A stretch of 64,000 nt of DNA. Origin: Thalia democratica (Eukaryota). The stretch covers positions 19,902,001-19,966,000 of the forward strand of contig OZ241827.1 in assembly GCA_965202585.1 (NCBI GenBank), given 5' to 3'. A model generated the notes under the pieces. The model was given only the letters and a program-made list of their open reading frames with translations. It was not told where the DNA came from and ran no database searches. Of the stretch, positions 17,201-50,400 are shown piece after piece (position 1 is the stretch's first letter; every line of letters begins with the position of its first letter). A program made the position numbers and the translations under genes.

Positions 17201-20200
17201 ACTGAGTTGGATCCCAAGCTGGGCGGGGATTCTGTAGTATAAGTGAACATTTAAAAATATTTGTATAAATAAAATTATACTAATGAATAAATTGACTTGC
17301 TCAATTTTTAGTAGTGATGTACCGGACCCACAATTTCGGGTCCGGCCGGACCCGGATCCGGACTTTTTTTTCAAACTAGAATCCGGCCGGAGCCGGACCC
17401 GGACTTTTTTTTCAAATTATAATCCGGCCGGAACCGGACCCGGACTTTTTTTTCAAACTAGAATCCGGCCGGAACCGGATCCGGACTTTTTTTTCAAATT
17501 AGAGTCCGGCCGGATCCGGATATCAGACAAAAATGGCAATATCCGGCCGGACCCGGATAGTGAGTCCGGTACATTACTAAAATAAACTAGCCTGAGTCAG
17601 AATGAGGTTTTTAAAAACTGAAAAAAATAACTTTAATCTAATAATAAGTAGAACAGCTAGCCACAAGGTTTACAAATTTAGATGTTATTTACAATTAAAA
17701 ATCTGAAATCAAGTTCATGAACACAATACACTAGAAAATTACAAAATATTGAAAACTGGATCAGCTCAAACTCATTCAAAATCTAAAAGAAAACTAGCCT
17801 GAGTTTTTACAAAAAAAAAATAAACTAGCCTGAGGCAGTCAAAGATTTTCTAAAATTCCCAAAAATTTTCAAACTAGCAGGGTTGCCACTGTTTAAGTCA
17901 ATAAAACTAGCTAGAGTGAGTATAAACAAGCCTGAGTCAGAATGAGGTTTTTAAAAACTGAAAAATTACTTTAATCTAATAATCAGTAGAACAGCTAGCA
18001 AAGGTTGACAATTTATTAGTAAAGTTGTGGACTGATTGTGGTACACTTAACTTATTAGTACTACCCATCATAATTAAATCCTACCTTATTTAATTAATAT
18101 CTAACAAATACTAAATTCTAACTGAGACTACTTTCTATAATCAGACACGACAGTTTTGAGTGATGAATCTTTTATATAAAACACAACAAGAAAAACTAGC
18201 ATATGCAAAATTATTAACACTTTAAAAACTGGAAGCTATTTAAATCTATATCAAAACACTTAAAACAAAAAATTAAATAAAACTTTTAGTAAACAAGAAA
18301 CTGTAAAATTTTTAATAAACTATTAAACTATAAACCTGGCTTAAATATTTAAACAATTAAACACCTGTTGAAATATTCACTTTTAAGACAAAACACCACT
18401 ACTTACAATAAGCATTCACAAAAACGTTCAAGATATTTTGTTGCTTCAAGCTACACACCAAACTAACTAACTGCTTACATATAAACTGCCTGTCATGTTC
18501 TGATGTTTTGTTGCATCAGTATTTAGTTTGAAACATTTCGTCATATGATTCTCATTGGCTCGTACATTCAACCGTATTAACTCTAAATATTCTCTTAGCT
18601 CGACTTTAAACAATAAATAATGCAAGTATTCATTCCAAAGTTTTCAATTTTACAACATATGTAAAGAATTGCATTTCATGAAATGTGTATTTATAGTTTA
18701 AATGTAAACAAGTTTAAATTAGTCACGTGTACAAAATGAGCCAATCACGGTAGGTGTTTAATTTTAACTGGCGAAAATGAATCTTATTAATTTTCACAGG
18801 GTTTTTTTTTGAAAAGATACTTTTCAGTATGCTCTTTTTTACTAACTAGATCCGGGTCCGGCCGGATCTCTGTTAGGATCCGGCCGGACCCGGATCCGGA
18901 CTTTATTTTCAAATTAGAATCCGGCCGGAACCGGACCCGGACTTTTTTTTCAAATTAGAATCCGGCCGGAACCGGATCCGGACTTTTTTTTCAAATTAGA
19001 GTCCGGCCGGATCCGGATATCAGACAAAAATGGCAATATCCGGCCGGACCCGGACCCGGATAGTGAGTCCGGTACATCACTAATTTTTAGTTGAAACTTT
19101 TAAATGGAAACGATGACTATTTTTATTACAAGTGAGTAATTTTTAGAAAAAACTTATTTATTATAAATAGCTACAAGAAAAAACAATTTCTTCAACTACT
19201 GTAAAATTTGAATAAAAATATTTAAACTTGTATAACACCTCAATTGTAGATTTTAAAATAAATCAAAATATAGTGTTATCTAATTAATTTAAATATTTTT
19301 GTCAATAAAAAAATAATAAGTTTATGAATTAAAACTATAGCTTACTTTTTTCACATAAACTCTTTAAAAACTTCTTTTATGTAAGATAAATTAAATTTAT
19401 ACCTGTACTTCGTTATTGAAACAAGCCAAATCTTGCTTGCACCTTCTAGTGATTGATTTTCTTCCGCCGTCGTACAAACGAGTTTCAGAAAAACAACTTT
19501 CCTGGTAAAAGACATGTTATTAGTTGAAACCCGGAATTTTTTTATGTAAATAGTAATATATGTAATCAAAACTAGTACAAGTACAACGCAATTTATCTTA
19601 GCTAGCACGATATAGACAATTACGAGTTTAAAACTGTTGTTAGCTTAATAAAATAGAAACCGTCAGTGTTTTTAAAATTGTCCTTTTTTCTCTTACATTT
19701 AAGTAGTTCTGTTTCATTCATAAAGTCTAATGTTTTTTTATTATTTGCAAGTATTACCTCGTTTGAGCTACATTTTTCTAATTTTCCTTTCAATTGACAA
19801 TCTATATCACTTTCAGCATTTTGACACGTCCAACAGTGTAAAGCTGCTCATTTAAAATATTGTTTATATGCTTGCAAAACTTTTCAAGTCTAGTATACAA
19901 TTCTATTTTCTATACAATTTATAGAAAAAGGTTTTTTTTAAGTCCTTACCCTAAGCTACTTGTTAGCAAATATAGAGCAGTGTTTTAAACTTTTTAAATA
20001 AGTGTAAAGCTGTCTGTTTTCACTACATTTTATTAAAACTTACAGACCATTTTAAATTAATAGAATATAAATTTAAGCTAGATATAAATAAGTCAAACAT
20101 TTTTAATATTCAACAGTTTTTAGCTTAAAAAAACTTTTTATTTATCATCAGGCTTAAAAAAAGAGAACTAAAGTTGTTCAAAAAGTACGTGGTGTTTTTA

Positions 20201-24381: not shown

Positions 24382-25217
24382 TTTTTCTAGAAAAGATCTT
24401 TTTTGTTCATTTCTAAGTTGATCTGTAAAAGAATTTTTTAAAGAGGTTTAATTTGTTTTAAATACTTTGTTTTTTCTTTGATATATTTTCTATTAACAAT
24501 TTTTTAAACTGAAAAAACTAAATGTATGTAGTCAAATAAAAAATATTTAGTTGAGATTTACCAAAAAGTTTTAAGAAATATACAAGTATGTAAAACTATT
24601 TAAGTCTTTAAATTTTTACTGCAAAATCGTTTTAGACTAATATAAGCATGCTAAAACTTATCCACTACAAAAACTAAAAATCTTTGTAATATAGTCATAA
24701 CAAATAAGCAAAAAAAATATGAATTTGTTTTACCAGAGTAGCTCAGAGGTGTATATCCAACTTTATCTTCTACAAAGTTATTTTTTTCGTTTACAGAATT
24801 ATTTGTCTCATCTGAAACGTTTTTACCTTCATGTACAAAACTATTTTTTTCTGCTATGAAACTATTTGGTTCTTTTACAACGTTTTCATTTTCTTGTAAA
24901 GAATTATTTTTTTCTTCTACAGAAAAATTTGTCTTTTCTTCATCGTTTTTATCTTCTTGTAAAAAATCATTTTTTTCTTCTACAGAACTATTTGTTTCTT
25001 CTACAACGTTTTTATTTTCTTCAACAGAATTATTTGGTTCTTCTACAACGTTTTTATTTTCTTCAACAGAATTATTTGGTTCTTCTACAACGTTTTCATT
25101 TTCTTGAACAAAATTATTTTTTTCTTCTATAGAATTACTTGTGTCTTCTTCAACGCTTTTATTTTCTTGTAAAAAATTATTTTTTTCTTCTACAACAATA
25201 TCATTCTGTTCCGTCAT
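24382..25217 (-). CDS. Glu/Asn-rich tandem-repeat protein; partial model, 3' end unresolved
   Basis: Exon 25217-24734 (ATG after an AAG acceptor; VEEKNNFLQENKNVVEEPNNS-type 21- and 14-aa repeats; donor GTAAAA) joins in phase 1 to exon 24422-24382 (DQLRNEQKRSFLEK, donor GTAAGT). Possible terminal exon from ~24071 (LKNVMKCQFKPLTIEQLRRV*). Possible 5'UTR exon with a donor near 25675. Confidence 0.55.
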
Positions 25218-29437: not shown

Positions 29438-30108
29438 TAGTGATGTACCGGACTCACTATCCGGGTCCGGGTCCGGCCGGATATTGCCATTTTAGTCTGA
29501 TGTTCGGATCCGGCCGGATTTTAATTTGAAAAAAAAGTCCGGATCCAGGTCCGGCCGGATCCTAACAGAGATCCGGCCGGACCCGGACCTAGTTAGTAAA
29601 AAAGAGCATACTGAAAAGTATTTTTTTTAAATCAAACCCTGTGTAAATTAATAAGAGTCATTTTCGTCAGTTAAAACTAAACACCTACCGTGATCGGCTC
29701 ATTTTGTACACGTGACTAATTAACATTTGTTTACATTTAAACTATGAAATAAACATTTCAGAAATGCAACTTTTTACATATGTAATAAAATTGAAAACTT
29801 TGGAATGAATACTTGCATTATTTATTGTTTAAAGTTGAGCTCAGAGAATATTTAGAGTTAATACGGTTGAATGTACGAGCCAATGAGAATCATATGACGA
29901 AATGTTTCAAACTAAACACTGATGCAACAAAACATCAGAACATGACAGGCAGTTTATATGTAAGCAGATAGTTAGTTTGGTGTGCAGCTTGATGCAACAA
30001 AATATCTTGAATTTTTTTGTGAATGGTTATTGTAAGTTTTGTTTTGTTTTAATAGTGAATATTTCAACTGGTGTTTAATTGTTTAAATATTTAAGCCAGG
30101 TTTATAGT
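29438..30108 (+). mobile_element. Composite hAT MITE, copy C, truncated (left ~670 bp only)
   Basis: Starts TAGTGATGTACCGGACTCACTATCCGGG after GTTATAAA. Colinear with copy A until ...CCAGGTTTATAGTT. No matching right TIR or TSD found. Confidence 0.88.
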
Positions 30109-38834: not shown

Positions 38835-41800
38835 ATTCTAAAGATGATAGTCAAGTTGACAAGTTTCTATCAGGTAAGTTTTTGGTTAAGTTGTTTAATT
38901 TTACTGCAGTTTAACAAATGTTAATTTTTATTTATGCAATTTATATTGTTTGTTTTTTCAAGTAAAAACATAGGAAAAACAATATAGGCTTATTTTGTTA
39001 TAAACCTACAATTTAAAAGTCTACAGTTTTATTTTAATTTTAAGTATATAACTGAACATGTGATTTGTTCTTAAAGTTAAGTATCTTTAACTTTTAAGTT
39101 TCATTATGTTAAAACCTCATTATGTTAAAATGCTAAAAACATAGTTTTTGAGTTTAAACTAAAAAGTAAAAAAAAAACATTAATTACATTGTGCAACTAT
39201 TTTCTAGTTTGTTTTTTATATTGTTTTATGTTTTTTACTAAAAGATTGTAGTTGTTTTACTATATAAAACGTGTCATGTTTCTTAGAGCTTAGTGAAAGG
39301 AAAATTATAGTAGTTGTTAGTTGTTTTTTCAATTTAAAGCTATATTTATGTACAAGGTGGCAACAAAACCTGGAATCATTGAAAAACGTGGAAAAATCTG
39401 AAATTTCAAACAATTTTTACATGTAAAGTAGTAAAAATTTAATTTGATACAATAATCTGTCATATAGAAACTTTTTTCGTCATCATAAAAATTGAAAAAA
39501 AAAACATATAAAGTAGCTTGAAAGTATTTTTCAATGTTGTAATACTACTTAACACTGTTTTTAACCTTTAACTTAATTTATACTAAAAGTAGACCAAAAA
39601 CCTATACTTTCAAAAACCTGGAAGAAATTTCTCAAAAACCAAAGGATACTCTGTATACATTTATTTTACTTGCTTTTACTGTCAGTGTTTAACACTCAAG
39701 TGCTACACTTTATTTTCTAGCTTTTATGAATAATGTATAAAAATTAATATTTTTTCTTTACAAAAGTGTAATTTATAATAAAAACAGTTATTATTTAGTT
39801 ATTTATTTAAAGACCTCAATTTAAAATTGTTTTAGACTTCTTCGGTTAAACAAATAATTTTTTGTTTACTTTTTTAAAATGTGAAAAATTTTAATTATAA
39901 TTTAATGATCATTAACTTTTAATAAATTTTATGTAAACCGTTTGAAAGTTTGACCAAGTTTTCTGAAATACCTATACTGTAGTTACTAGAAGTGTATCTA
40001 AAATATTCTAATAAAGTAAAGTATCAGTCAATATTTTTTACTTAAGGAACATGAAAGTTTAAAGTTTTAGACTTTACTATCTGTTTATTAAAACTTAACT
40101 CTAACAAGGTACAATTTTGCAGGTATCTGTAATTTAGCTGCTTAGAAGTTTGTACTAGTTTAATTAATAGTAAATCTATTAAAATTTATCTGTTAAAAAG
40201 TATACTTTTATTTTACAGACGTCTTTCAACTGTGTATGAAGGACGTAGTGCAGTATTCAAGAGATAGGTCGAACCCGGTCATCAAGTTCAAGACTCCAGA
40301 ACAGCTCCTAGAAACAATTGACTATTCACTGTCAAAAGAAGGAACTGACAATGAAAAGTTGCTGGAATTGTGTGAGAAGGTTGTTGAGCACAGTCAAAAA
40401 ACTGGTAAGTTATTGATAATTACATATTGTTAATGTTATAATTCCATACTTTTAAATATAGTACTCGTAAATTTAAGTACTACTTAAATTCTTTAATGAT
40501 AGTTGTAAAATTAAGTACTTAATTTTTAATAATGCACAATTAGTAAGCATATTTACAATTCATTAAAAAATAAATTTTAACAAATAAGTTTATACTTTTT
40601 AAAAGACTAAAAAAATAGTACTCATTTGTTAAAATTTATTTTTTAATGAATTGTAAATATGCTTACTAATTGTGCATTATTAAAAATTAAGTACTTAATT
40701 TTACAACTATCATTAAAGAATTTAAGTAGTACTTAAATTTACGAGTACTATATTTAAAAGTATGGAATTATAACATTAACAATATTTTTTGAATTTCACA
40801 ACAAATAAAACGTATTAGGAAGCAAAAATGTATTCAAAAAAGCTGTTTTAAGTCCTTCCTTTTAAGTTTATACTTTTTAAAAGACTAAAAAAATAGTACT
40901 CAGTAGAAATTGATGATTACACAAAAAAGACTAGCAAATATTAGTAGATGATATATTACTACAAAAAACTATTCTAGCTATATTTTGACTGTGTATATGA
41001 CGGTTACTACAACCTTACACTGACTTATAGGCATGATAAATTTTCATTACTAATTTTAAAGTTTTTGATTGTCTTATTACCCTTCCTTTAATTTCATAAC
41101 TTTTATACTTGTTAGGACACCCATACTTCTTTAACCAAATGTATGGTGGAACAGACCCTTACGGGTTAGCTGGAAATATTATAGTGGACTCATTGAACAC
41201 AAATGGGTTTGTTTATAGTTTAAATATACAACTCAATCATTAAAATTCTGAATTTAGTATCACCTGTTCCATAATCTTTTAAAGTAGTTTACTAAAGTAA
41301 ATTAGCTGTCAAAGTGTAGATATAAATATTTTATTGTTTGAAAATGTTTAGTGGTTTATTTAGGTCCATTGTTTTGTTTAGTTACCTTGCTAATGAGTAA
41401 GCGCAGTCTTTTGCTAATAACTTATTTTCTCAAGGAATCATCATTCTCATTTTCTAATCTTGTCTTATTTAATTAAACTACATAAAATATTCCAAATAGC
41501 TCCTGCAAACAGTCATTGAAAAAATAATAATATAATAAAATATAACAGACACACATTTCAAGTGTCTCCAACATTCAGTGTTGCTAAAAAAAAAAATATA
41601 TTTTATAATAAAATATAACAGACACACATTTGAAGTGTCCCCAGCGTTTAGTGTTGCTGAAAATAAAAATAATTTATAAATACAACAGACACACATTTTA
41701 AGTGTCACCAGCGTTTAGTGTTGCTGAAAATTAAATAATTTATAATAAAATAAAACAGACACACGTTTGAAGTGTCTCCAGCGTTTAGTGTTGCTGAAAA

Positions 41801-44454
41801 GGTGCTTGTGGATCATTTGAAAAGTTTCCTCAACTATCAGGGTGATGGCACGTTCTGTCCAGGTTTAATTTTGTAATTATATTTTTTTAAAACTCATAGT
41901 TCATTAGTTTTTCAGTTATTTTTAAGTTTGATAATTGCAAACACCGTCTGTTTTTCTTGTATTCACTTTTTATTGTTTTTATTCATCCCAAGATTTTAAT
42001 AAATTTTACTCAGGTTTGTTTTATGATATTGCATTTCAAATTAAAACTAAAAATGGTTTGTCTAAATCATGGAACTCAATTTTTGTTATTTCTATTTTTT
42101 AAATCATTAATATTAATAAGTAACGTTTTTTCTTATAATGTAAGGAACATTTCCTAAAAATTTGAACACGATTGATTAAAAAATGAAGAAGAAGATAGAT
42201 TTTTAGTGATTTTTTAAATTACCGAGAAAATTGATCCCAAAAAATTTGCTGTCAATACATTTGAATTGCAAAATTTTTACAAAAAAAAACATCTCAAAAG
42301 TTAAATGATATTTTTGAATTCTATAAAGACTGGCTTGTAGTTTGTACTTAAAGTTTTCATATAAATACTGAAGTCATTTTTTGTAAAAAAAGTGTTGGAC
42401 CCCCTCTATGGCCTTAAGATAACAACCTTGAAATAATTTTTTTCTAATTGCTGTAGACTAGTAAACGTAGTTTTTACTAAGAACCCTCTGTAAATTTTTG
42501 AATTAAATATTAAATACAGTTATATTATAAATAACTTGTACCAAATAAATATTAATAGCTTGCTTGAAAAACTATTTTAAGTATAGTTCATGACTAATGT
42601 TGACTGTTACAACTTTTTATAACTCTTTCGGTCCAAACTTTGCAGTTCTTTTTTACACTTCATAATTTTAAAAAATTTAATCAAAAAAAATACCAAGTAA
42701 TAAAAAGTAAAGTTTTGGAATTAACCAGATACTTAACTATTGATTTATGAAAGTAAGAGAAAAAATATTCCACCATCAACAGGCGGATCTTACTGCGGTC
42801 TCCTCGCTATGGCCTCGGCCAGAACCGCCAAGTTCCCGGGCATCAGGCAGAAAGGAGCTTCGAACTTGCCCACTATGAAAGTGTTCTGCAGTGACCAGGT
42901 TACTATGAAAATTACTTGTTTATACTTTGTACATTGTGTTTGTAAAATTAATAAATCAACCTAGATATTTCGTCACTAACTTATTTGTAAAGTATATAGA
43001 AAAAATTAATATAACTACTTGTCTTAACAACAAAACATTGCTCAATTTACTGTAAAGTAACAAGCTTGTATAAATGATATCTAAATATTTTACTTATGTA
43101 GTAAAAACAAAAAAATAAAACTTTGATTAACTTTTGTAATTATTTTTTTAGTAGTTTTTAATTACCAGGCGCACTACTCGGCGCAGAAGAACAGCATGGT
43201 GCTGGGTATCGGATTGGACAATTGCGTGAGTGTGAAGTCGGATGACAAGGGGAAGATGATTGTTAGTGAACTACAGAAGGCCGTGGAAGAAGCTAAGAAT
43301 GATGTGAGTAAATGTATAACATATATATATATATATATATATATAATAGAATTAAGTTATTTAACTTAATAAATTAAATTTTTCACACTGAGCCCACCTT
43401 GAGGGCTTTATTAATAAAAAGGTTTATTTAAAGATGCAAAACTCAAAGAACTCGAGTTTCGTGATTACTCACTCATCAGCTTCAAAACAAGTTTAAAATA
43501 AAGCACAAAACAAAATCACTAATGAAGGTAAAAAATTTTTTGCATAAATAGATTATGACGTAATTTTGAAACTATCAAAAATCGTGCAAAACGGCTTGTG
43601 CAAAAACCAATCTAACAACAGACAATAAACTAGCAAAAATTCATATAACTTCAGTGAGTAACTACATATTAGGACAGATAATTGGAAGAGATAAAGATAA
43701 AATTAAGATGCAAATTGAAATTTAGGTTATTTTAAGATGAAATTAAAACTTGTTAAACTTTAAAAGCGACTTTTTTATATGTCTACAAGACGATACAAAC
43801 TCGCTTCTTTTGTTTAAACATCTTTTGTCTTTCAGTGCATATACAACGGCTGATGCTTCTTTGAGACACAGCCTACATATCGGGCTATTGCCGTCGGCTA
43901 TAGGCTGTGCTCTTTTTATAACTTCCCAGGATATTTCGTAGTCGATGCCGCTGCGCTTTAAGCCACAAACATATAAGCCGACGGCAATAGCCCGATATGT
44001 AGGCTGTGTCTCAAAGAAGCATCAGCCGTTGTATATGCACTGAAAGACAAAAGATGTTTAAACAAAAGAAGCGAGTTTGTATCGTCTTGTAGACATATAA
44101 AAAAGTCGCTTTTAAAGTTTAACAAGTTTTAATTTCATCTTAAAATAACCTAAATTTCAATTTGCATCTTAATTTTATCTTTATCTCTTCCAATTATCTG
44201 TCCTAATATGTAGTTACTCACTGAAGTTATATGAATTTTTGCTAGTTTATTGTCTGTTGGTAGATTGGTTTTTGCACAAGCCGTTTTGCACGATTTTTGA
44301 TAGTTTCAAAATTACGTCATAATCTATTTATGCAAAAAATTTTTTACCTTCATTAGTGATTTTGTTTTGTGCTTTATTTTAAACTTGTTTTGAAGCTGAT
44401 GAGTGAGTAATCACGAAACTCGAGTTCTTTGAGTTTTGCATCTTTAAATAAACC

Positions 44455-44485
<31 letters not shown>

Positions 44486-47400
44486 TTAAGTTATTTAACC
44501 TAATAAATTAAATTTTTCACACTGAGCCCACCTTGAGGGCTTTATTAATAAAAAATATATAGTAAAAATATACTAATATATAGTTACTCACTGAAATTAT
44601 ATGAATTTTTGCTAGTTTATTGTCTGTTGGTAGATTAATTTTTGCACAAGCCGTTTTGCATGGTTTTTGATAGTTTCAAAATTACGTCATAATCTATTTA
44701 TGCAAAAAATTTTTTACTTTCATTAGTGATTTTGTTTTGTGCTTTATTTTAAACTTGTTTTGAAGCTGATGAGTGAATAGTCACGAAACTCGAGTCCTTT
44801 GAGTTTTGCATCTTTAAATAAACTTTTATATATATATATATAAATTTACTATTAATGTGAGCTTGACTGTTTTTTAATGATGTGAGTTTGACTTTTAAAA
44901 ATTAGTTGTTCGAGTTTTTATTTTTATTAAGTGATGTGAGTTTGAACTTAGTTGAAAGTAATGTGAGTGTGAATTTTTTGTTTGGTTTTACTCAAAGTTA
45001 GTTTTATAAAACTATAAAATGATACTGTTCTGTCAAAAAATGTTTTATTTGCTGATAATGCTAAGAATAATGTGAGTTTGAATTTGGTTAAAAAAGTTAT
45101 GAGTTTTGAATAATTTAAGTTTGAATTTGGTTTGAAATAATTTGAGATTGACTGTAATTTGATTAAATTTAAGTTTTAAATTTTTTTGAAATGTTTTGAG
45201 TTTGATTTTGATTTCAAATAATTTGAGTTTAAACTTGGTTTGAAAAATGTTTAGTTTGAACTTGATTTGAAATAGTTTGAGTTTGAACATGGTTTGAATA
45301 GTTTGAACTTGGACTTGATTTAAAAAAAGTATGAATTTAAACTTTATTTGAAATAATTTTTGTTTGAACTTAATTTAAAATAATTTGAGTTTGAACTTGT
45401 TCTAAAAAACTTTTTGTTTGAACTTTAAAGATAAGCAAAATGTGAAAAGTTTAATGTGAAAAGTAAATGCTATACTAACTAATATTTGTATTTAGTTTAT
45501 CTTTTAAGATAAATTTCATAATAGTTTTATTGCTTTTAGATTAATTATTACTTGAAAACCTAGAGGCTACTTTAAAGTTAGATTTTTGATTTGAATGGAT
45601 AATGTTTATAATTTTAGCCATATGTTTATCATGAATAAACTTTTAGTTACTTAGTTAACTGGTGTTTTTTGGTTGTTTTACAGTACATTTACATGTTATA
45701 AATTTTGTTTTCACTGTTGAGAAAAACCTGGAACTTGACAAATTAGGCTGAAAAAAGCCTGGAGTTTTAAACAAATTTTACATTTGAAGTAATGAAATTT
45801 TGATTTGACATAAAAATCTATCATATAGTTGAATTTTGTTTGTCATCATTAATAACTTTTTTTTTTATTGAAAACACATTTAAATAAGCTTCACAGTATC
45901 TTTTTAGTGCTGTTGTACCATATAAGACAATTTTTAACTTCAAACTTAATTTTGTACTAGAATAAACCCACAAACTTGTACTTTCGAAAACCAGGAAGAA
46001 ATTTCTCAAAAACCTTTGGCAATCCTGCTGCAGAATTATTTAAAATTTAATCTTTAATGTTTGAAAATATTTTTGACTGAATTTGCCGTGGTGAAACTTT
46101 AAAAACGTGAATAATGGCGAGTAGTTGTTGAGATCAATGTTCTGCAAGATGAAGATTTCTGTCTACAGTTGAAAATGAATTCTGTTTTGAAATATCTTGT
46201 TTGATGAAGAGTGGTTGACTTATGTCTTCAAGATGGTTCCTAGAATTTCGAGATGAAGAATTTTGACAAGAGATGCTTGTTTCAAAGAACTGTTGTTTCG
46301 GAATGTATAATTGGAGATTGGTCGCTTTGGAATCGTTGAATATTTTGGTTGTGAAAGTTTGAGTTTTTTTAGTTTGTGCCTTGTATGAGTTTTATGTTTG
46401 TTTTAAGGTTGTAATTTGTTTTTTTTTTTTATGTTAGTGTCTTTCAGTTTAAGTGGCTTAGGTTTTAATGCCTAGGTCCTTCGTTTGACAATAAACTTCA
46501 AAAAAATGAAAATAATAACACTTACACGCTATTAATATTATTCTAATAATTTTTCTTTTATTTTTCGTATCAACTATTTTGATAAGGTCTTCAAGAACCA
46601 AAGTTTTTTTAGGTCTTCAACAACATTATCATCTTAATTCTTTTTTTTAATTTAAGTTTTTTATGTTTTGGTTAGTTTTTAAATAGTTTTAACAAAAAGT
46701 TGAGTTTTACTTTTAATGTAAACACTAGGTATAACTTTTTGTTTTGTGATTCAATAAGTTTGTTTTGTGACAACTGAAAAACAATCATTGCAACAATAAA
46801 ATGATTTTAGTGTTGTTATTGTTTTAGTGCTAATTTGAATTTCAATAGATTTGTGAAACTGGGTGTTACACAATTGCCTAAATATTTATTAAAATTTTAT
46901 ACAGTAATTTAATATAACTTAAAATCATTTTAAATTGTATGTAAAATTAATTTGTCGAAAACTTAATTTTTATGCTGTGTTCTTTATATGTGTTATGTAA
47001 AAGATAAAATTTTGTTTGTGAACCTTGAAGTTTTCATTTTTGTTTGTATAACGTTATGTGCTAAAAGTTAATAAATGACTAAACTTAACTTTGCTTTAAA
47101 TTTAGTGAGTAAATAAAATTTAATACTGCTATCTTTGTTTTAATTGATCTTTAGTATTCATTTTTCATTATTATTTTGTGCAAAATAATTTTAATAAATT
47201 TACTTATTTAACTATACAATTACTCTTATTTGAAATAAATACAGCTGCCTACTTAATGTTAAAACACAAAATTTAGCTTAATATGATATTAAACATAATA
47301 TTATTCTATCTTTTACTAGTATATCAGACAACTAAGTTTACTACAAAAGTCGTATTGCTTTAAAAGTTTCCAAAATGAGTAAAATTGTTGTTTATATACA

Positions 47401-50400
47401 GCTTACTTAAGCAATAATTTAGCTAAATTCTTATTTCTTTACTGATAATTAAACATTTAATTATTGCCTCAACAAAACAATTTATCCTGGGTATTTTCAC
47501 CTGTATATGTTTTTTATTTCATTTTTACACAATTGCTACAAATTTACTTCTACATATATATAACAGAGAACTAACTTCAAAATACTTTGCCAGTAGTTGA
47601 ACAGTTAGTTCTTGTCATAGCTAGATAGTTTATAGTTTGTTTAGCACCATTTGTACACTTAAAATATTGATAACAGGGGTGTGTTCTGGTCCCACTCACC
47701 TTATACACAATATTTTATCATGTACAAGTTTTGAAATTTATTACACTATTTACATTTGTAACAGGGGTGTGTACCACTGATGGTGATTGCAACCGCAGGC
47801 ACTACCGTGCTGGGAGCTTTCGACGATTTCAATGAAGTGTCGCAGATTTGCAAGAGCAACCAGATGTGGATGCACGTAGATGTATGTTTGAAGTTTTGCA
47901 TTTTATTACTAGTTGTTGTTTTTTTTTTCGAAATTTGAAAAATTCCGTTACCTTTATACCTGGCGGCAAAGTTTGAATTAAGAAATGGTCATGATTTGAC
48001 TCCTTTGCTTAAAATAAATAAAAACACACATTTTCCATGTAAGCTCGAAGAAGGAATCTACTTACAATAAAGAAAGTGAAAGAATTCAATTTTTATATAA
48101 AACTGTGATAGAAGTTGCATAAATTTAAAATATTTAAGTTCAAATGTTTATGTTGTTTTGCAAATAGCTTACTGCTAAGCACATTTACAATGTTAGAAGT
48201 ACTTAAGACTGCTTGAAATTGTAACAAAAAAATTCATCATTTCTTAATATGGCAGCAGGAGTAAATGTACAAATAACTAAGCTCGCCCAGTTGCTAACTA
48301 TTTATAAAAGTTATTTATAACCACCTTTACTAGTAATTAAAACTAATAAAAACTAATAAATAATTAATACTTAAAGGGGGCATGGGGTGGAAGCGCGCTT
48401 GTTTCGAATAAATATCGCCACCTACTGGATGGTTGTGAGAAGTTTGTTTTGTTTTAGTTATAAATGTACTTATAAATAAAAATTAAAGTTAAACAAAATA
48501 GAATTCACTTGAACTGAAACTGTAGCTACTTCTCAACTACTGAGCGGTTGTGAATTTTTTTCTTCATATTTTTATTGGAAATTGCAGATATAATAATTTT
48601 CTTGAAGTTAGTGGAGAAAATTGAACAGCTTAAACTATATTTTTATAATTTACCTTATTAATAATGTTTTTTTTGTTTATTTTTTTTGTATTTTATCAAT
48701 AAATAATAAGACTGCTTTTTATTTAATTTAGACTAAAAAGTATTTGTTTATAAAGTTCTAACTTTATATCAAATCATCTAAGTACAGTAAATGAATTTTG
48801 AATGCATATAAGAAATTAAATAAAGTAAGAATTTTTTTTTTAATGTTACATATTTTTTATAAATAAAGTATAAAGTAGTGTTTGTCAAAGTTATTTTTAA
48901 TTTTCAGAGCAGATTCGTTCGCTTGGAACCCACACAAACTATTAGGAGCCCCAATACAATCATCAGTACTCCTTTTCAGAGAGAAGGTAAATAGTTGATT
49001 CATTATAAAGTAAAAATAAAACACATAGTCTTTAAAAATGAGAAAACGTAGTTTGATTAGTTAAATAAAGTATGATGTATTTTAAACTGTCTAAATAACT
49101 TAAAAAGCAGTTTTAATACTGCAACTTACTACTAATAATTATCTCACTGAGTCTTCTATGTAACATTCGTGATGTCATATAAATTTATATTTTGATATTC
49201 GTTTGCTTTTAATATCTTTATAAATCAAATAATATCAAGCATCAATTATCGGGTTTAAAAGCGTATAATACAGAAAAATATTAAGATATTTTACATGTTA
49301 TGTTATAAGTATAAGATATATCTGAGGTAATATTTATCTTTTCAAGTTTGTAATTATTTCACATATGAATAGAAAAAGTATCAACTAAGTTAAACTTCAA
49401 GTTTTATAAGAACTTTAAAAAATTTGAATTTCAAACATAAACAGATTTGTCATCATTATATACTGTTAAAATTTTTGAAAAAAAAGTGGTACTGAAGACT
49501 CGAACTTTGTATAACCTGGTGTAGTTAACTTTGCAAAGTTGTATTTGGAAATATCTAATGTTAAAATTGAAATAACAATAGGTATTTCATTTATTTTATC
49601 AACAGGACATGCTACGAAAGAGTCAGTCTACAGAAGTGAAGTACTTGTTTCAAAACGACAAGCCTTACGATATGCAGTATGACCTCGGTAGAAACTTGCT
49701 GCAGTGTGGAAGATCTGTTAGTTATACAGGAAATTATTTAATAAGTGTTTGTATTCTTTTTTGTAAAAGCTTACTTTTATTCAGCATTGTAATTAAGTGT
49801 TTTTTTTAAATCAAAGTTTTGTTTTCTGTTACTTATGTACTTTTTAAAACCATCATTCTAAGTTTAAAAAAAAATATGAAAGAAGTAAACTAATATAATA
49901 TGCCAAAACACCCATTTTTAAATTACCCATAATTTTTTGGTTTTGACAATAACTCCAATATATATATATTTGATTTTTATTTCCCATTTTTTAAAAATAT
50001 TACAAAATAAGTCAATCGGTACGAAATACTAAAAATACAAATCATTACGAAGCGTCCAAAAACATGAAAAAAGTTAAATAAATACCCTGTCAAAAACTAT
50101 TACAAAATAAAATCGCTTTTTTTAGTGTTTTTTCTTGAAAACTACCAAACACTCCCTTTTTGAAATCCCCCTCGTTATATTTCAGACACAAAATCCAAAA
50201 GTTGTTTCAAAATGACAAACTCTTTTTTAGTGCGACACGTTCAAAATTATAACAACAAAAAACCCAAAGTTACAAAATCTCAAAGCTACACTGCCAAAAA
50301 ATGATTAAAAAACAAAAAACAATAAACTAAACACAAAAAAAAACATTCTAAATTTATGAATAATAGTTATCCCCCGTTATAATAGTGCGTTTTTGAAAAA

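Follow-up and report, generated by a model that had tools for sequence, protein, structure and literature searches.

Copies of Penelope-like elements (PLEs) are typically 5′-truncated and form partial tandems with an adjacent inverted copy (PMC8557442), carry a tail extension of 30-40 bp on one side and favour microsatellites (Craig et al. 2021, PMC8557442). The same insertion architecture appears in Evgen'ev and Arkhipova 2005, to the extent that PMC8557442 cites that work. PLE terminal repeats (pLTRs) carry minimal hammerheads, often as close pairs on opposite strands (PMC4209133), for which cleavage went undetected with a single motif and was poor with dimers (Cervera and de la Pena 2014, PMC4209133). 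A retrozyme is taken here to be a tandem array, dimer or longer, of a non-coding 150-450-bp monomer, each unit with a hammerhead.

We analysed a composite locus within a 64-kb window (the whole stretch of DNA under study) and read it, with a probability of about 85%, as three 5′-truncated PLE 3′ ends in the (TA)n of a decarboxylase intron, with a pair of host-sense hammerheads as a by-product. The locus combines hammerhead motifs, an ORF remnant of PLE identity, inverted and tandem anatomy, (TA)n junctions, high copy number and one rare junction, that of module X with the second plus-strand copy. On this reading it is an ordinary PLE arrangement with no dedicated circular-RNA cassette.

The host gene, on the plus strand, encodes a pyridoxal-dependent decarboxylase (GAD/CSAD-like). 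Its exon at 43169-43303 matches positions 154-194 of the Pfam Pyridoxal_deC profile (E 1e-4) and is directly followed by a GTGAGT donor site at 43304, as read from the sequence. In the next exon (47762-47881) the match continues without a gap, at profile positions 195-234 (E 3.8e-13). These flanking matches bear out the intronic location proposed by an earlier, sequence-only reading of this DNA. The intron (43304-47761, plus strand; next exon start at ~47762-47765) contains the entire composite, which begins 17 nt inside it at an (AT)12 microsatellite (43321-43345; TRF and sequence) that forms the left border.

Next to this microsatellite lies the first copy of module X (43346-43420, minus strand), a 75-nt direct repeat that is read as the 3′-terminal extension of the adjoining copy, M1, and has a GC hairpin and an AATAAA inside. 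M1 (43421-43975, minus strand) is a 5′-truncated PLE 3′ end detected through an inverted repeat of 491 nt at 99%. It is composed of a 28-nt tail (43421-43448), a hammerhead (43442-43486), a 3′ UTR and an ORF remnant of 81 codons (43745-43988, minus strand, stop at 43742-43744) derived from the C terminus of the PLE GIY-YIG endonuclease. In a 76-nt spacer the reading frame is open on the minus strand only; the inner foldback junction (43899-43976) is known from the assembly alone. Repeat comparison and alignment place a second 5′-truncated PLE 3′ end, P1, at 43976-44456 on the plus strand, with an ORF remnant of 51 codons (43977-44129), a stop codon (44130-44132) and a 3′ UTR. M1 and P1 stand head-to-head and differ at 2 positions in 486 nt (arms 99.6% identical), and in both the hammerhead starts ~257 nt after the stop codon.

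A (TA)13 microsatellite (44457-44482, called by TRF) separates this pair from a second insertion unit. There, module X recurs on the minus strand (44480-44554) with one difference from its first copy, and is followed not by the usual inverted tail but by an 18-nt AT-rich filler (44555-44572), which alignment and a drop in depth mark as locus-specific. The filler leads into P2 (44573-44824, plus strand), a shorter 5′-truncated PLE 3′ end that comprises 3′ UTR only. P2 is more diverged than P1, from which it differs at 11 positions in 252 nt, all 11 of them transitions. A (TA)n tract (44825-44845), seen in the sequence, forms the right border, and family depth is zero past 44844. Unit 1 would thus be a head-to-head pair, consisting of a longer main minus-strand copy ending in X and an inverted plus-strand copy without X, while unit 2 would consist of the second X module, the filler and the shorter, more diverged plus-strand copy.

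Two complete type I hammerheads on the host-sense strand had been the starting point of the sequence-only reading, and both are present as described. HHR1 (44389-44433, GUU triplet, identified by sequence and pattern scan) and HHR2 (44759-44803, GUC triplet, likewise identified by sequence and pattern scan) have predicted cuts after 44426 and 44796, spaced 370 nt apart. Each starts with the 5′ strand of helix I, TTTGAAG (44389-44395 and 44759-44765), continues through CTGATGA, helix II (GTGA/TCAC), GAAA and the palindromic ACTCGAGT, and ends with the 3′ strand of helix I, CTTTGAG (44427-44433 and 44797-44803). Loop II is GTAA in HHR1 and ATAG in HHR2, residue 17 is T or C, respectively, and alignment finds no other motif differences than these two loop II positions and residue 17. 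A third motif, identical to HHR1, lies antisense to the host gene (43442-43486, minus strand; pattern match at 43450-43479); it had escaped the sequence-only reading.

The core of CUGAUGA, GAAA and a GUU or GUC triplet is intact in all three copies, with three helices arranged around it and helix I open, as in type I hammerheads. Three of the seven pairs in helix I are G-U, and helix II is 4 bp long. In the monomer, helix III consists of 2 bp and a 4-nt loop; in a dimer it would become an 8-bp palindrome. Dimeric cleavage of minimal PLE hammerheads is reportedly the finding of Lunse et al. 2017. Across the family, contigs of runs X1 and X2 hold no core variant at a frequency of at least 10%. 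Outside the core, A>C at 44776 and T>G at 44781 each stand at ~50% in both runs; together they replace the A-U pair that closes helix II by C-G. The pattern CTGATGA-N(8-30)-GAAAC-N(2-8)-GT has three matches in the window against 0.03 expected, which count as one independent occurrence since all three are copies of one repeat.

In the hammerhead scan that the sequence-only reading had proposed, Rfam Hammerhead_1 (RF00163) aligns over its full length to HHR1 (20.2 bits) and HHR2 (24.3 bits, E 0.004), but both scores lie under the gathering cut-off of 34 bits, at which a scan of the whole window returned zero matches. Low Rfam scores would be expected of minimal PLE hammerhead variants. In energy calculations the isolated monomer prefers a competing hairpin (-9.6 kcal/mol) over the hammerhead fold (-1.4 kcal/mol), and its z-score against shuffles is about -0.3. 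HHR1 and HHR2 are genuine motifs of the PLE-type minimal type I hammerhead, with predicted cut sites.

The identity of the surrounding element follows from the ORF remnant, which carries the motifs CRLC...LNKRSE...CRH. Its 81-aa tail has 1163 homologues at E<=1e-3, and most of the matches listed reach the C-terminal end of the hit; in the 710-aa protein P0154 it aligns to residues 628-699. An alignment of ten relatives of ~700 aa reveals shared FDVxxFYPSI, YRDDGL and SNHP motifs and a CNC..CP..C finger, together with IYKA..YIG, CRLC, LNKRxE and CRH, a set that by its sequence reads as an RT with a C-terminal GIY-YIG domain. Pfam GIY-YIG gives weak matches in these relatives, just upstream of the part aligned to the remnant, and atlas neighbours carry RVT_1 and GIY-YIG. 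Because Pfam returned no match for the 81-aa tail and no RVT_1 match in the ~700-aa relatives, the RT assignment rests on the alignment motifs and the atlas neighbours. A PDB sequence search with two longer relatives yielded nothing useful. At the locus itself the PLE ORF is limited to its last 51-81 codons, and no RT coding sequence occurs in the 64-kb window, so the assignment to PLEs is based on the 81-aa tail together with relatives of 35-80% identity. A full-length copy of this exact family did not appear in the analysis, nor is there one at the locus.

Related elements have a comparable 3′ organisation. The contigs of the closest tail homologues, P0001 and P0003, end before the 3′ UTR. 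Two Tara scaffolds, L004 and L005, consist of units of 2932 and 2666 nt repeated head to tail. Every unit contains a single minimal hammerhead, located 327-635 nt past the stop codon, with helices I and II that are unlike those of the locus in sequence but keep their pairing. A related marine contig, L002, also has a head-to-head layout. In JGI metagenome contigs the hammerhead pattern had a single match, L001, which we set aside as an unrelated bacterial chance match.

Family-wide behaviour of the junctions was assessed in runs X1 and X2, each of unrecorded type (DNA or RNA), with ~2,200-2,500 contigs apiece. Module X has a very high copy number (summed word depth of 5-6e5), and in most contigs the sequence next to it is, as at M1, the inverted form of the 28-nt tail that follows the hammerhead; loose ends at 44554/44555 and the X25 contig display this order. 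We infer from this that X serves as a 3′ extension of the PLE copy. The junction of X with P2 has a depth of ~1e4 at 44565-44595, or ~4% of neighbouring bins, and is rare genome-wide, while each of its components occurs in thousands of copies. We also considered whether (TA)n plus X, directly repeated over 99 nt (43322-43420 and 44457-44554), could be a long target-site duplication of the inverted pair, and rejected this because X is present in very high copy and normally precedes the inverted tail across the genome.

These junctions bear directly on the proposal that the interval between the two cuts is a retrozyme-like cassette, in which host transcription drives both sense hammerheads, the pair dimerises in cis and a 370-nt circularised RNA becomes mobilisable by the PLE RT. 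Consistent with such a cassette, both sense motifs are intact and have permitted triplets, and their 8-nt palindrome might support a helix III between molecules. Animal retrozymes, too, are known at 170-400 nt (PMC7229834), with a relationship to the terminal repeats of PLEs (bioRxiv 10.64898/2026.07.22.740005). We nevertheless regard it as improbable. The 370-nt interval does not hold up as a monomer: its hammerheads belong to two different truncated copies that differ in age, with unequal divergence (2/486 versus 11/252), and P1 and P2 form a direct repeat of only 276 nt at 95%, with the (TA)13, the 75-nt X and the filler lying between them. TRF called no 370-nt array at the locus, X normally continues into the inverted tail rather than into P2, and the upstream copy holds an ORF remnant where a non-coding cassette had been envisaged. 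Nor does the window encode the RT invoked for mobilisation. Cleavage by minimal PLE hammerheads is poor even in dimers (PMC4209133), and the 8 kcal/mol deficit of the monomer fold relative to its competing hairpin points the same way. Two metatranscriptome runs yielded 1-2 contigs at a depth of 3-10, none of them back-joined and none a linear or circular RNA of unit length, which weighs weakly against a circle as contigs so few and shallow cannot show absence. One of these RNA contigs runs on into a longer PLE copy.

The predicted fold of a transcript of 43400-44830 (-898 kcal/mol) has M1 and P1 fully paired and places HHR1 inside their ~490-bp perfect duplex, which speaks against the two sense copies dimerising in cis. 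In host transcripts HHR1 would be sequestered in this long hairpin, and HHR2, left alone, would be essentially inactive. Minimal PLE hammerheads whose helix III has 2 bp require a partner, and even with one their cleavage is poor. The same duplex raises the idea of an exapted hairpin-RNA locus, in which the 491-bp inverted repeat yields dsRNA that is diced into small RNAs against the PLE family or acts as an antisense switch gating the hammerheads; the hammerheads themselves would then be incidental. The fold energy and the near-identity of the arms, in an intron on the transcribed strand, are as such a locus would have them, and silencing would be useful against so abundant a family. A single recent insertion accounts for the near-identity of the arms, however, and PLE insertion yields head-to-head pairs by default (PMC8557442), with such pairs common in this family and present in L002, so that no selection is needed to explain the pair; we therefore think exaptation unlikely. 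Similarly small is the chance that host transcription through the composite has a functional RNA outcome of either kind, a 370-nt circle or an antisense lock by the inverted copy on intron self-cleavage. For the circle, cis pairing of HHR1 with HHR2 would have to precede closure of the hairpin, and the released RNA would be circularised; the lock would couple the fate of the decarboxylase pre-mRNA to unwinding or editing of the hairpin.

Tandem and inverted PLE structures are known to trouble assemblies (PMC8557442), and no contig spans the stretch; the foldback could accordingly be an artefact of a chimeric or fold-back long read, with only one or two tandem copies real. Three observations make this very improbable. 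In both runs X most often leads into the inverted tail, the spacer prolongs the ORF of one arm, which is what two copies with different truncation points should give, and the related contig L002 has the same head-to-head layout. The left junction, X then inverted tail, was also found in an RNA contig.

The preferred reading, a composite of truncated PLE copies, accounts for the hammerhead pair by the insertion process. Each copy would bring the family's own minimal type I hammerhead, as is normal for PLE terminal repeats, and because each truncated copy carries its own, the 370-nt spacing is read as a by-product of two neighbouring insertion units rather than as a unit under selection for a small RNA product. 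Head-to-head pairs probably form through priming of reverse transcription from both nicked strands of the target. One priming event would start at the RNA 3′ end and include X, while the other would start on an AU-rich stretch just past the 28-nt tail and leave X out. If this reading is true, the locus is a matter of routine repeat annotation, and in another animal genome minimal hammerheads simply mark the 3′ ends of an abundant Penelope-like family. Two sense hammerheads spaced by a few hundred nucleotides would then be insufficient alone to define a retrozyme. As a clean example of PLE insertion, with a head-to-head pair, an extension at one end and (TA)n targets, the locus could aid models of integration. 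Judging by the modelled fold, a near-perfect ~490-bp hairpin in the intron of an expressed gene may also be a reasonable spot for small RNAs against the PLE family.

Compared with animal non-LTR retrozymes, the locus shares type I hammerheads on the same strand a few hundred nucleotides apart (Cervera and de la Pena 2020, PMC7229834) and AT-rich non-coding sequence related to PLE terminal repeats (Li et al. 2026, 10.64898/2026.07.22.740005). It differs in having no tandem array of a homogeneous monomer, in the ORF remnant of its upstream copy and in its hammerheads, which are of the minimal PLE type without loop-loop contacts. The likeness to the hammerheads of PLE pLTRs extends to the full catalytic core, the 2-bp helix III with a palindromic loop for an extended intermolecular helix, and the occurrence of close opposite-strand pairs and dispersed truncated copies in massive numbers. 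Helices II and I measure 4 and 7 bp here, compared with 7-8 and 4-5 bp in the Cercyon-type minimal hammerheads of S. mansoni (PMC4209133). PLE hammerheads lie in a terminal repeat or 3′ non-coding region, and both at the locus and, in the same layout, in L004 and L005 the motif sits in non-coding sequence 3′ of the ORF of an RT/GIY-YIG element. In its insertion architecture, the locus departs from described PLEs by an extension of 75 nt rather than 30-40 bp, by two units side by side and by the lack of a full-length copy, but otherwise has every feature of that architecture: 5′ truncation, an inverted beside a direct copy, a partial tandem, a one-sided extension and a microsatellite target, here (TA)n.

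The plus strand carries two minimal type I hammerhead motifs between 44389 and 44803, both of them complete: HHR1 (44389-44433) and HHR2 (44759-44803). In order, each comprises the first strand of helix I (TTTGAAG, 7 nt), CTGATGA, a 4-bp helix II (GTGA/TCAC) whose loop II is GTAA or ATAG, then GAAA and the palindrome ACTCGAGT, a T or C as residue 17, and finally CTTTGAG, which pairs back to form helix I. Predicted cut sites fall after 44426 and after 44796, a spacing of 370 nt. The sequence-only reading had placed both motifs on the host sense strand with differences only in loop II and residue 17; reading the sequence confirms the motifs, and the copy alignment confines their differences to two loop II positions and residue 17. 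Three matches to a degenerate hammerhead pattern occur in the window, where shuffles predict 0.03, and the third match (43450-43479, minus strand), absent from the earlier list, is identical to HHR1. The 23-mer CCAATGAGAATCATATGACGAAA, identical at 18536-18558 (minus) and 29880-29902 (plus), 11 kb apart, was rejected as a hammerhead because its core is mutated; the pair is probably another dispersed or inverted repeat.

An Rfam scan returned no match at the gathering threshold. Narrow scans with Hammerhead_1 align over the full length of the model, and the scores of 24.3 bits (HHR2) and 20.2 bits (HHR1) do not reach the cut-off of 34. Folded alone, each 51-nt motif prefers a competing hairpin of AAACUCGA with UUGAGUUU (-9.6 kcal/mol versus -1.4 for the hammerhead fold), and its z-score against shuffles is about -0.3. 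The motif is therefore real as a sequence pattern but, as modeled, thermodynamically unremarkable as a monomer. Hammerheads of Penelope-like elements (PLEs) have been described as one class with a helix III of 1-2 bp and a palindromic loop, to which the window motifs belong; when such minimal motifs were tested, single copies gave no detectable cleavage and dimers cleaved at a low level (PMC4209133).

We ordered the surrounding parts by repeat finding and BLAST against the window. The composite opens with (AT)12 (43321-43345) and a 75-nt module, X (43346-43420), followed by two 5'-truncated PLE 3' ends, M1 (43421-43975, minus) and P1 (43976-44456, plus). Next come (TA)13 (44457-44482), a second X (44480-44554), an 18-nt filler (44555-44572), a shorter PLE copy, P2 (44573-44824, plus), and (TA)n from 44825. 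M1 and P1 form 491-nt inverted arms (43409-43899 and 43976-44466) that are 99.6% identical (2 differences in 486 nt), enclose a 76-nt loop and lie in an intron on the transcribed strand. Since the frame of this spacer is open on the minus strand only, it belongs to M1, which is truncated slightly further 5' than P1. P2 and P1 are separated by 11 differences over 252 nt, every one a transition (Fisher p = 2.4e-4 versus the M1/P1 rate). Between P1 (44203-44454) and P2 (44573-44824), eight of these 11 run from GC to AT toward P2, which fits AT-biased decay of the older copy; editing or deamination could also account for it.

In its inner part, each arm carries the last codons of an ORF, 81 of them in M1 and 51 in P1, and the hammerhead follows 257 nt after the stop. 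For the 81-aa remnant, a library of 1.84 billion proteins yields 1163 homologues at E<=1e-3; among the matches listed, most extend to the C-terminal end of the homologue, and in a 710-aa protein the remnant aligns with residues 628-699. Ten aligned relatives of ~700 aa share FDVxxFYPSI, YRDDGL, SNHP, a CNC..CP..C finger, IYKA..YIG, CRLC, LNKRxE and CRH, motifs that identify them, by sequence, as a putative reverse transcriptase (RT) with a C-terminal GIY-YIG endonuclease. Penelope-like elements of the EN+ type are defined by this architecture. On the relatives, the GIY-YIG matches from Pfam are only weak and lie just upstream of the aligned part, and atlas neighbours carry RVT_1 and GIY-YIG. 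No RT remnant was found anywhere in the window, so the PLE RT invoked by the sequence-only reading must act in trans from elsewhere. The sole ORF in the window longer than 150 aa (24651-25217, minus) encodes a 188-aa low-complexity protein with VEEKNNF/VEEPNNS-like repeats. Two Tara Oceans scaffolds, L004 and L005, contain related PLEs as head-to-tail tandems with units of 2932 and 2666 nt, respectively, each unit bearing a single minimal hammerhead at 327-635 nt past the stop, whose helices I and II are unlike those of the window in sequence yet still paired. Another marine (Tara/ENA) metagenome contig, L002, holds a head-to-head pair of ORF tails (33-201 and 559-803) with ~75% DNA identity to the window PLE family.

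Contigs from four public runs were placed on 43976-44900, including 2476 from run X1 and 2232 from run X2, which have two organism labels and an unrecorded DNA or RNA type. Summed word depths are around 1e5, and the family of the window copies has thousands of copies. Module X is the deepest part (5-6e5) and is followed in most contigs by GGTTTATTTAAAGATG.AAAACT.AAAG, which is the 28-nt post-hammerhead tail in reverse complement, an arrangement also present at the left junction (43420/43421). These two properties make X part of the element, a terminal extension of the minus-strand copy and not host DNA, and rule out the 99-nt direct repeat of (TA)n and X as a target-site duplication. At 44565-44595 the depth is down to about 1e4, which marks the junction that creates the 370-nt "monomer", X-filler-P2, as rare or private. 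Beyond 44844 depth is zero, and hence the family ends at the tail and (TA)n. Within the hammerhead, the only variable parts are loop II and the positions 44776 (A>C) and 44781 (T>G), these two each at about 50% in both runs. Jointly they would turn the helix II closing pair from A-U into C-G, consistent with a compensatory change; the frequencies were taken site by site.

Pyridoxal_deC profile positions 154-194 match an exon that ends at 43303, and positions 195-234 match one whose start is at about 47762. These matches place the composite in an intron of ~4.46 kb within a decarboxylase gene on the plus strand, with HHR1 and HHR2 in host sense, which bears out the placement proposed earlier. 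Only 17 nt separate the donor site from the composite. Just downstream in the same intron, at 45050-45425, a 27-nt unit, GTTTTGAATAATTTGAGTTTGAACTTG, is repeated in tandem about 12 times and shows higher-order periods of 54 and 81 nt; this array lies outside the contig-covered stretch, which ended at 44900. The preceding intron region (41517-41800) has four tandem copies of a ~73-nt unit with a short hairpin-like core, ACAGACACACATTTGAAGTGTCTCC.

The predicted fold of a 43400-44830 transcript (-898 kcal/mol) is a ~490-bp perfect M1/P1 duplex that includes HHR1 and would leave HHR2 as a lone minimal motif beside it. Such a 491-bp inverted repeat hairpin could plausibly give rise to dsRNA or to small RNAs directed against the PLE family. 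The release of a 370-nt monomer, as proposed earlier, is not upheld: HHR1 belongs to one insertion unit and HHR2 to another, which means that the sequence between them is no family unit, and it spans the rare or private junction. One 765-nt metatranscriptome contig continues past P1-like sequence for another 468 nt of a longer PLE copy, and a 203-nt contig carries X, then the inverted tail and hammerhead. No back-joined contig occurs among the few metatranscriptome contigs; as these thin RNA data are contigs, which cannot prove absence, we leave a released 370-nt RNA a very slim chance.

Retrozymes are recognized by homogeneous short tandem repeats and unit-length linear/circular RNA molecules (Cervera and de la Pena 2020, PMC7229834), and by this standard the locus does not qualify as a retrozyme cassette. 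A 2026 preprint makes the case that terminal regions of PLEs, of exactly this kind, gave rise to retrozymes (10.64898/2026.07.22.740005). The hammerheads at the locus are those of PLE 3' ends, in an insertion that is nested or adjacent; the original observation was correct, and its object is ordinary. We propose two insertion units side by side within one (TA)n tract: Unit 1 (X, M1 and P1) and Unit 2 (X, filler and P2), the latter being older or from another source copy. A simple model would account for the asymmetry: priming by one nicked strand at the 3' end of the RNA would retain X, and priming by the other on the AU-rich stretch directly after the 28-nt tail would lose it. This two-unit history matches published PLE insertions, which are strongly 5'-truncated, form partial tandems, have a truncated copy next to them in inverted orientation, are extended at only one end and favour microsatellites (PMC8557442).
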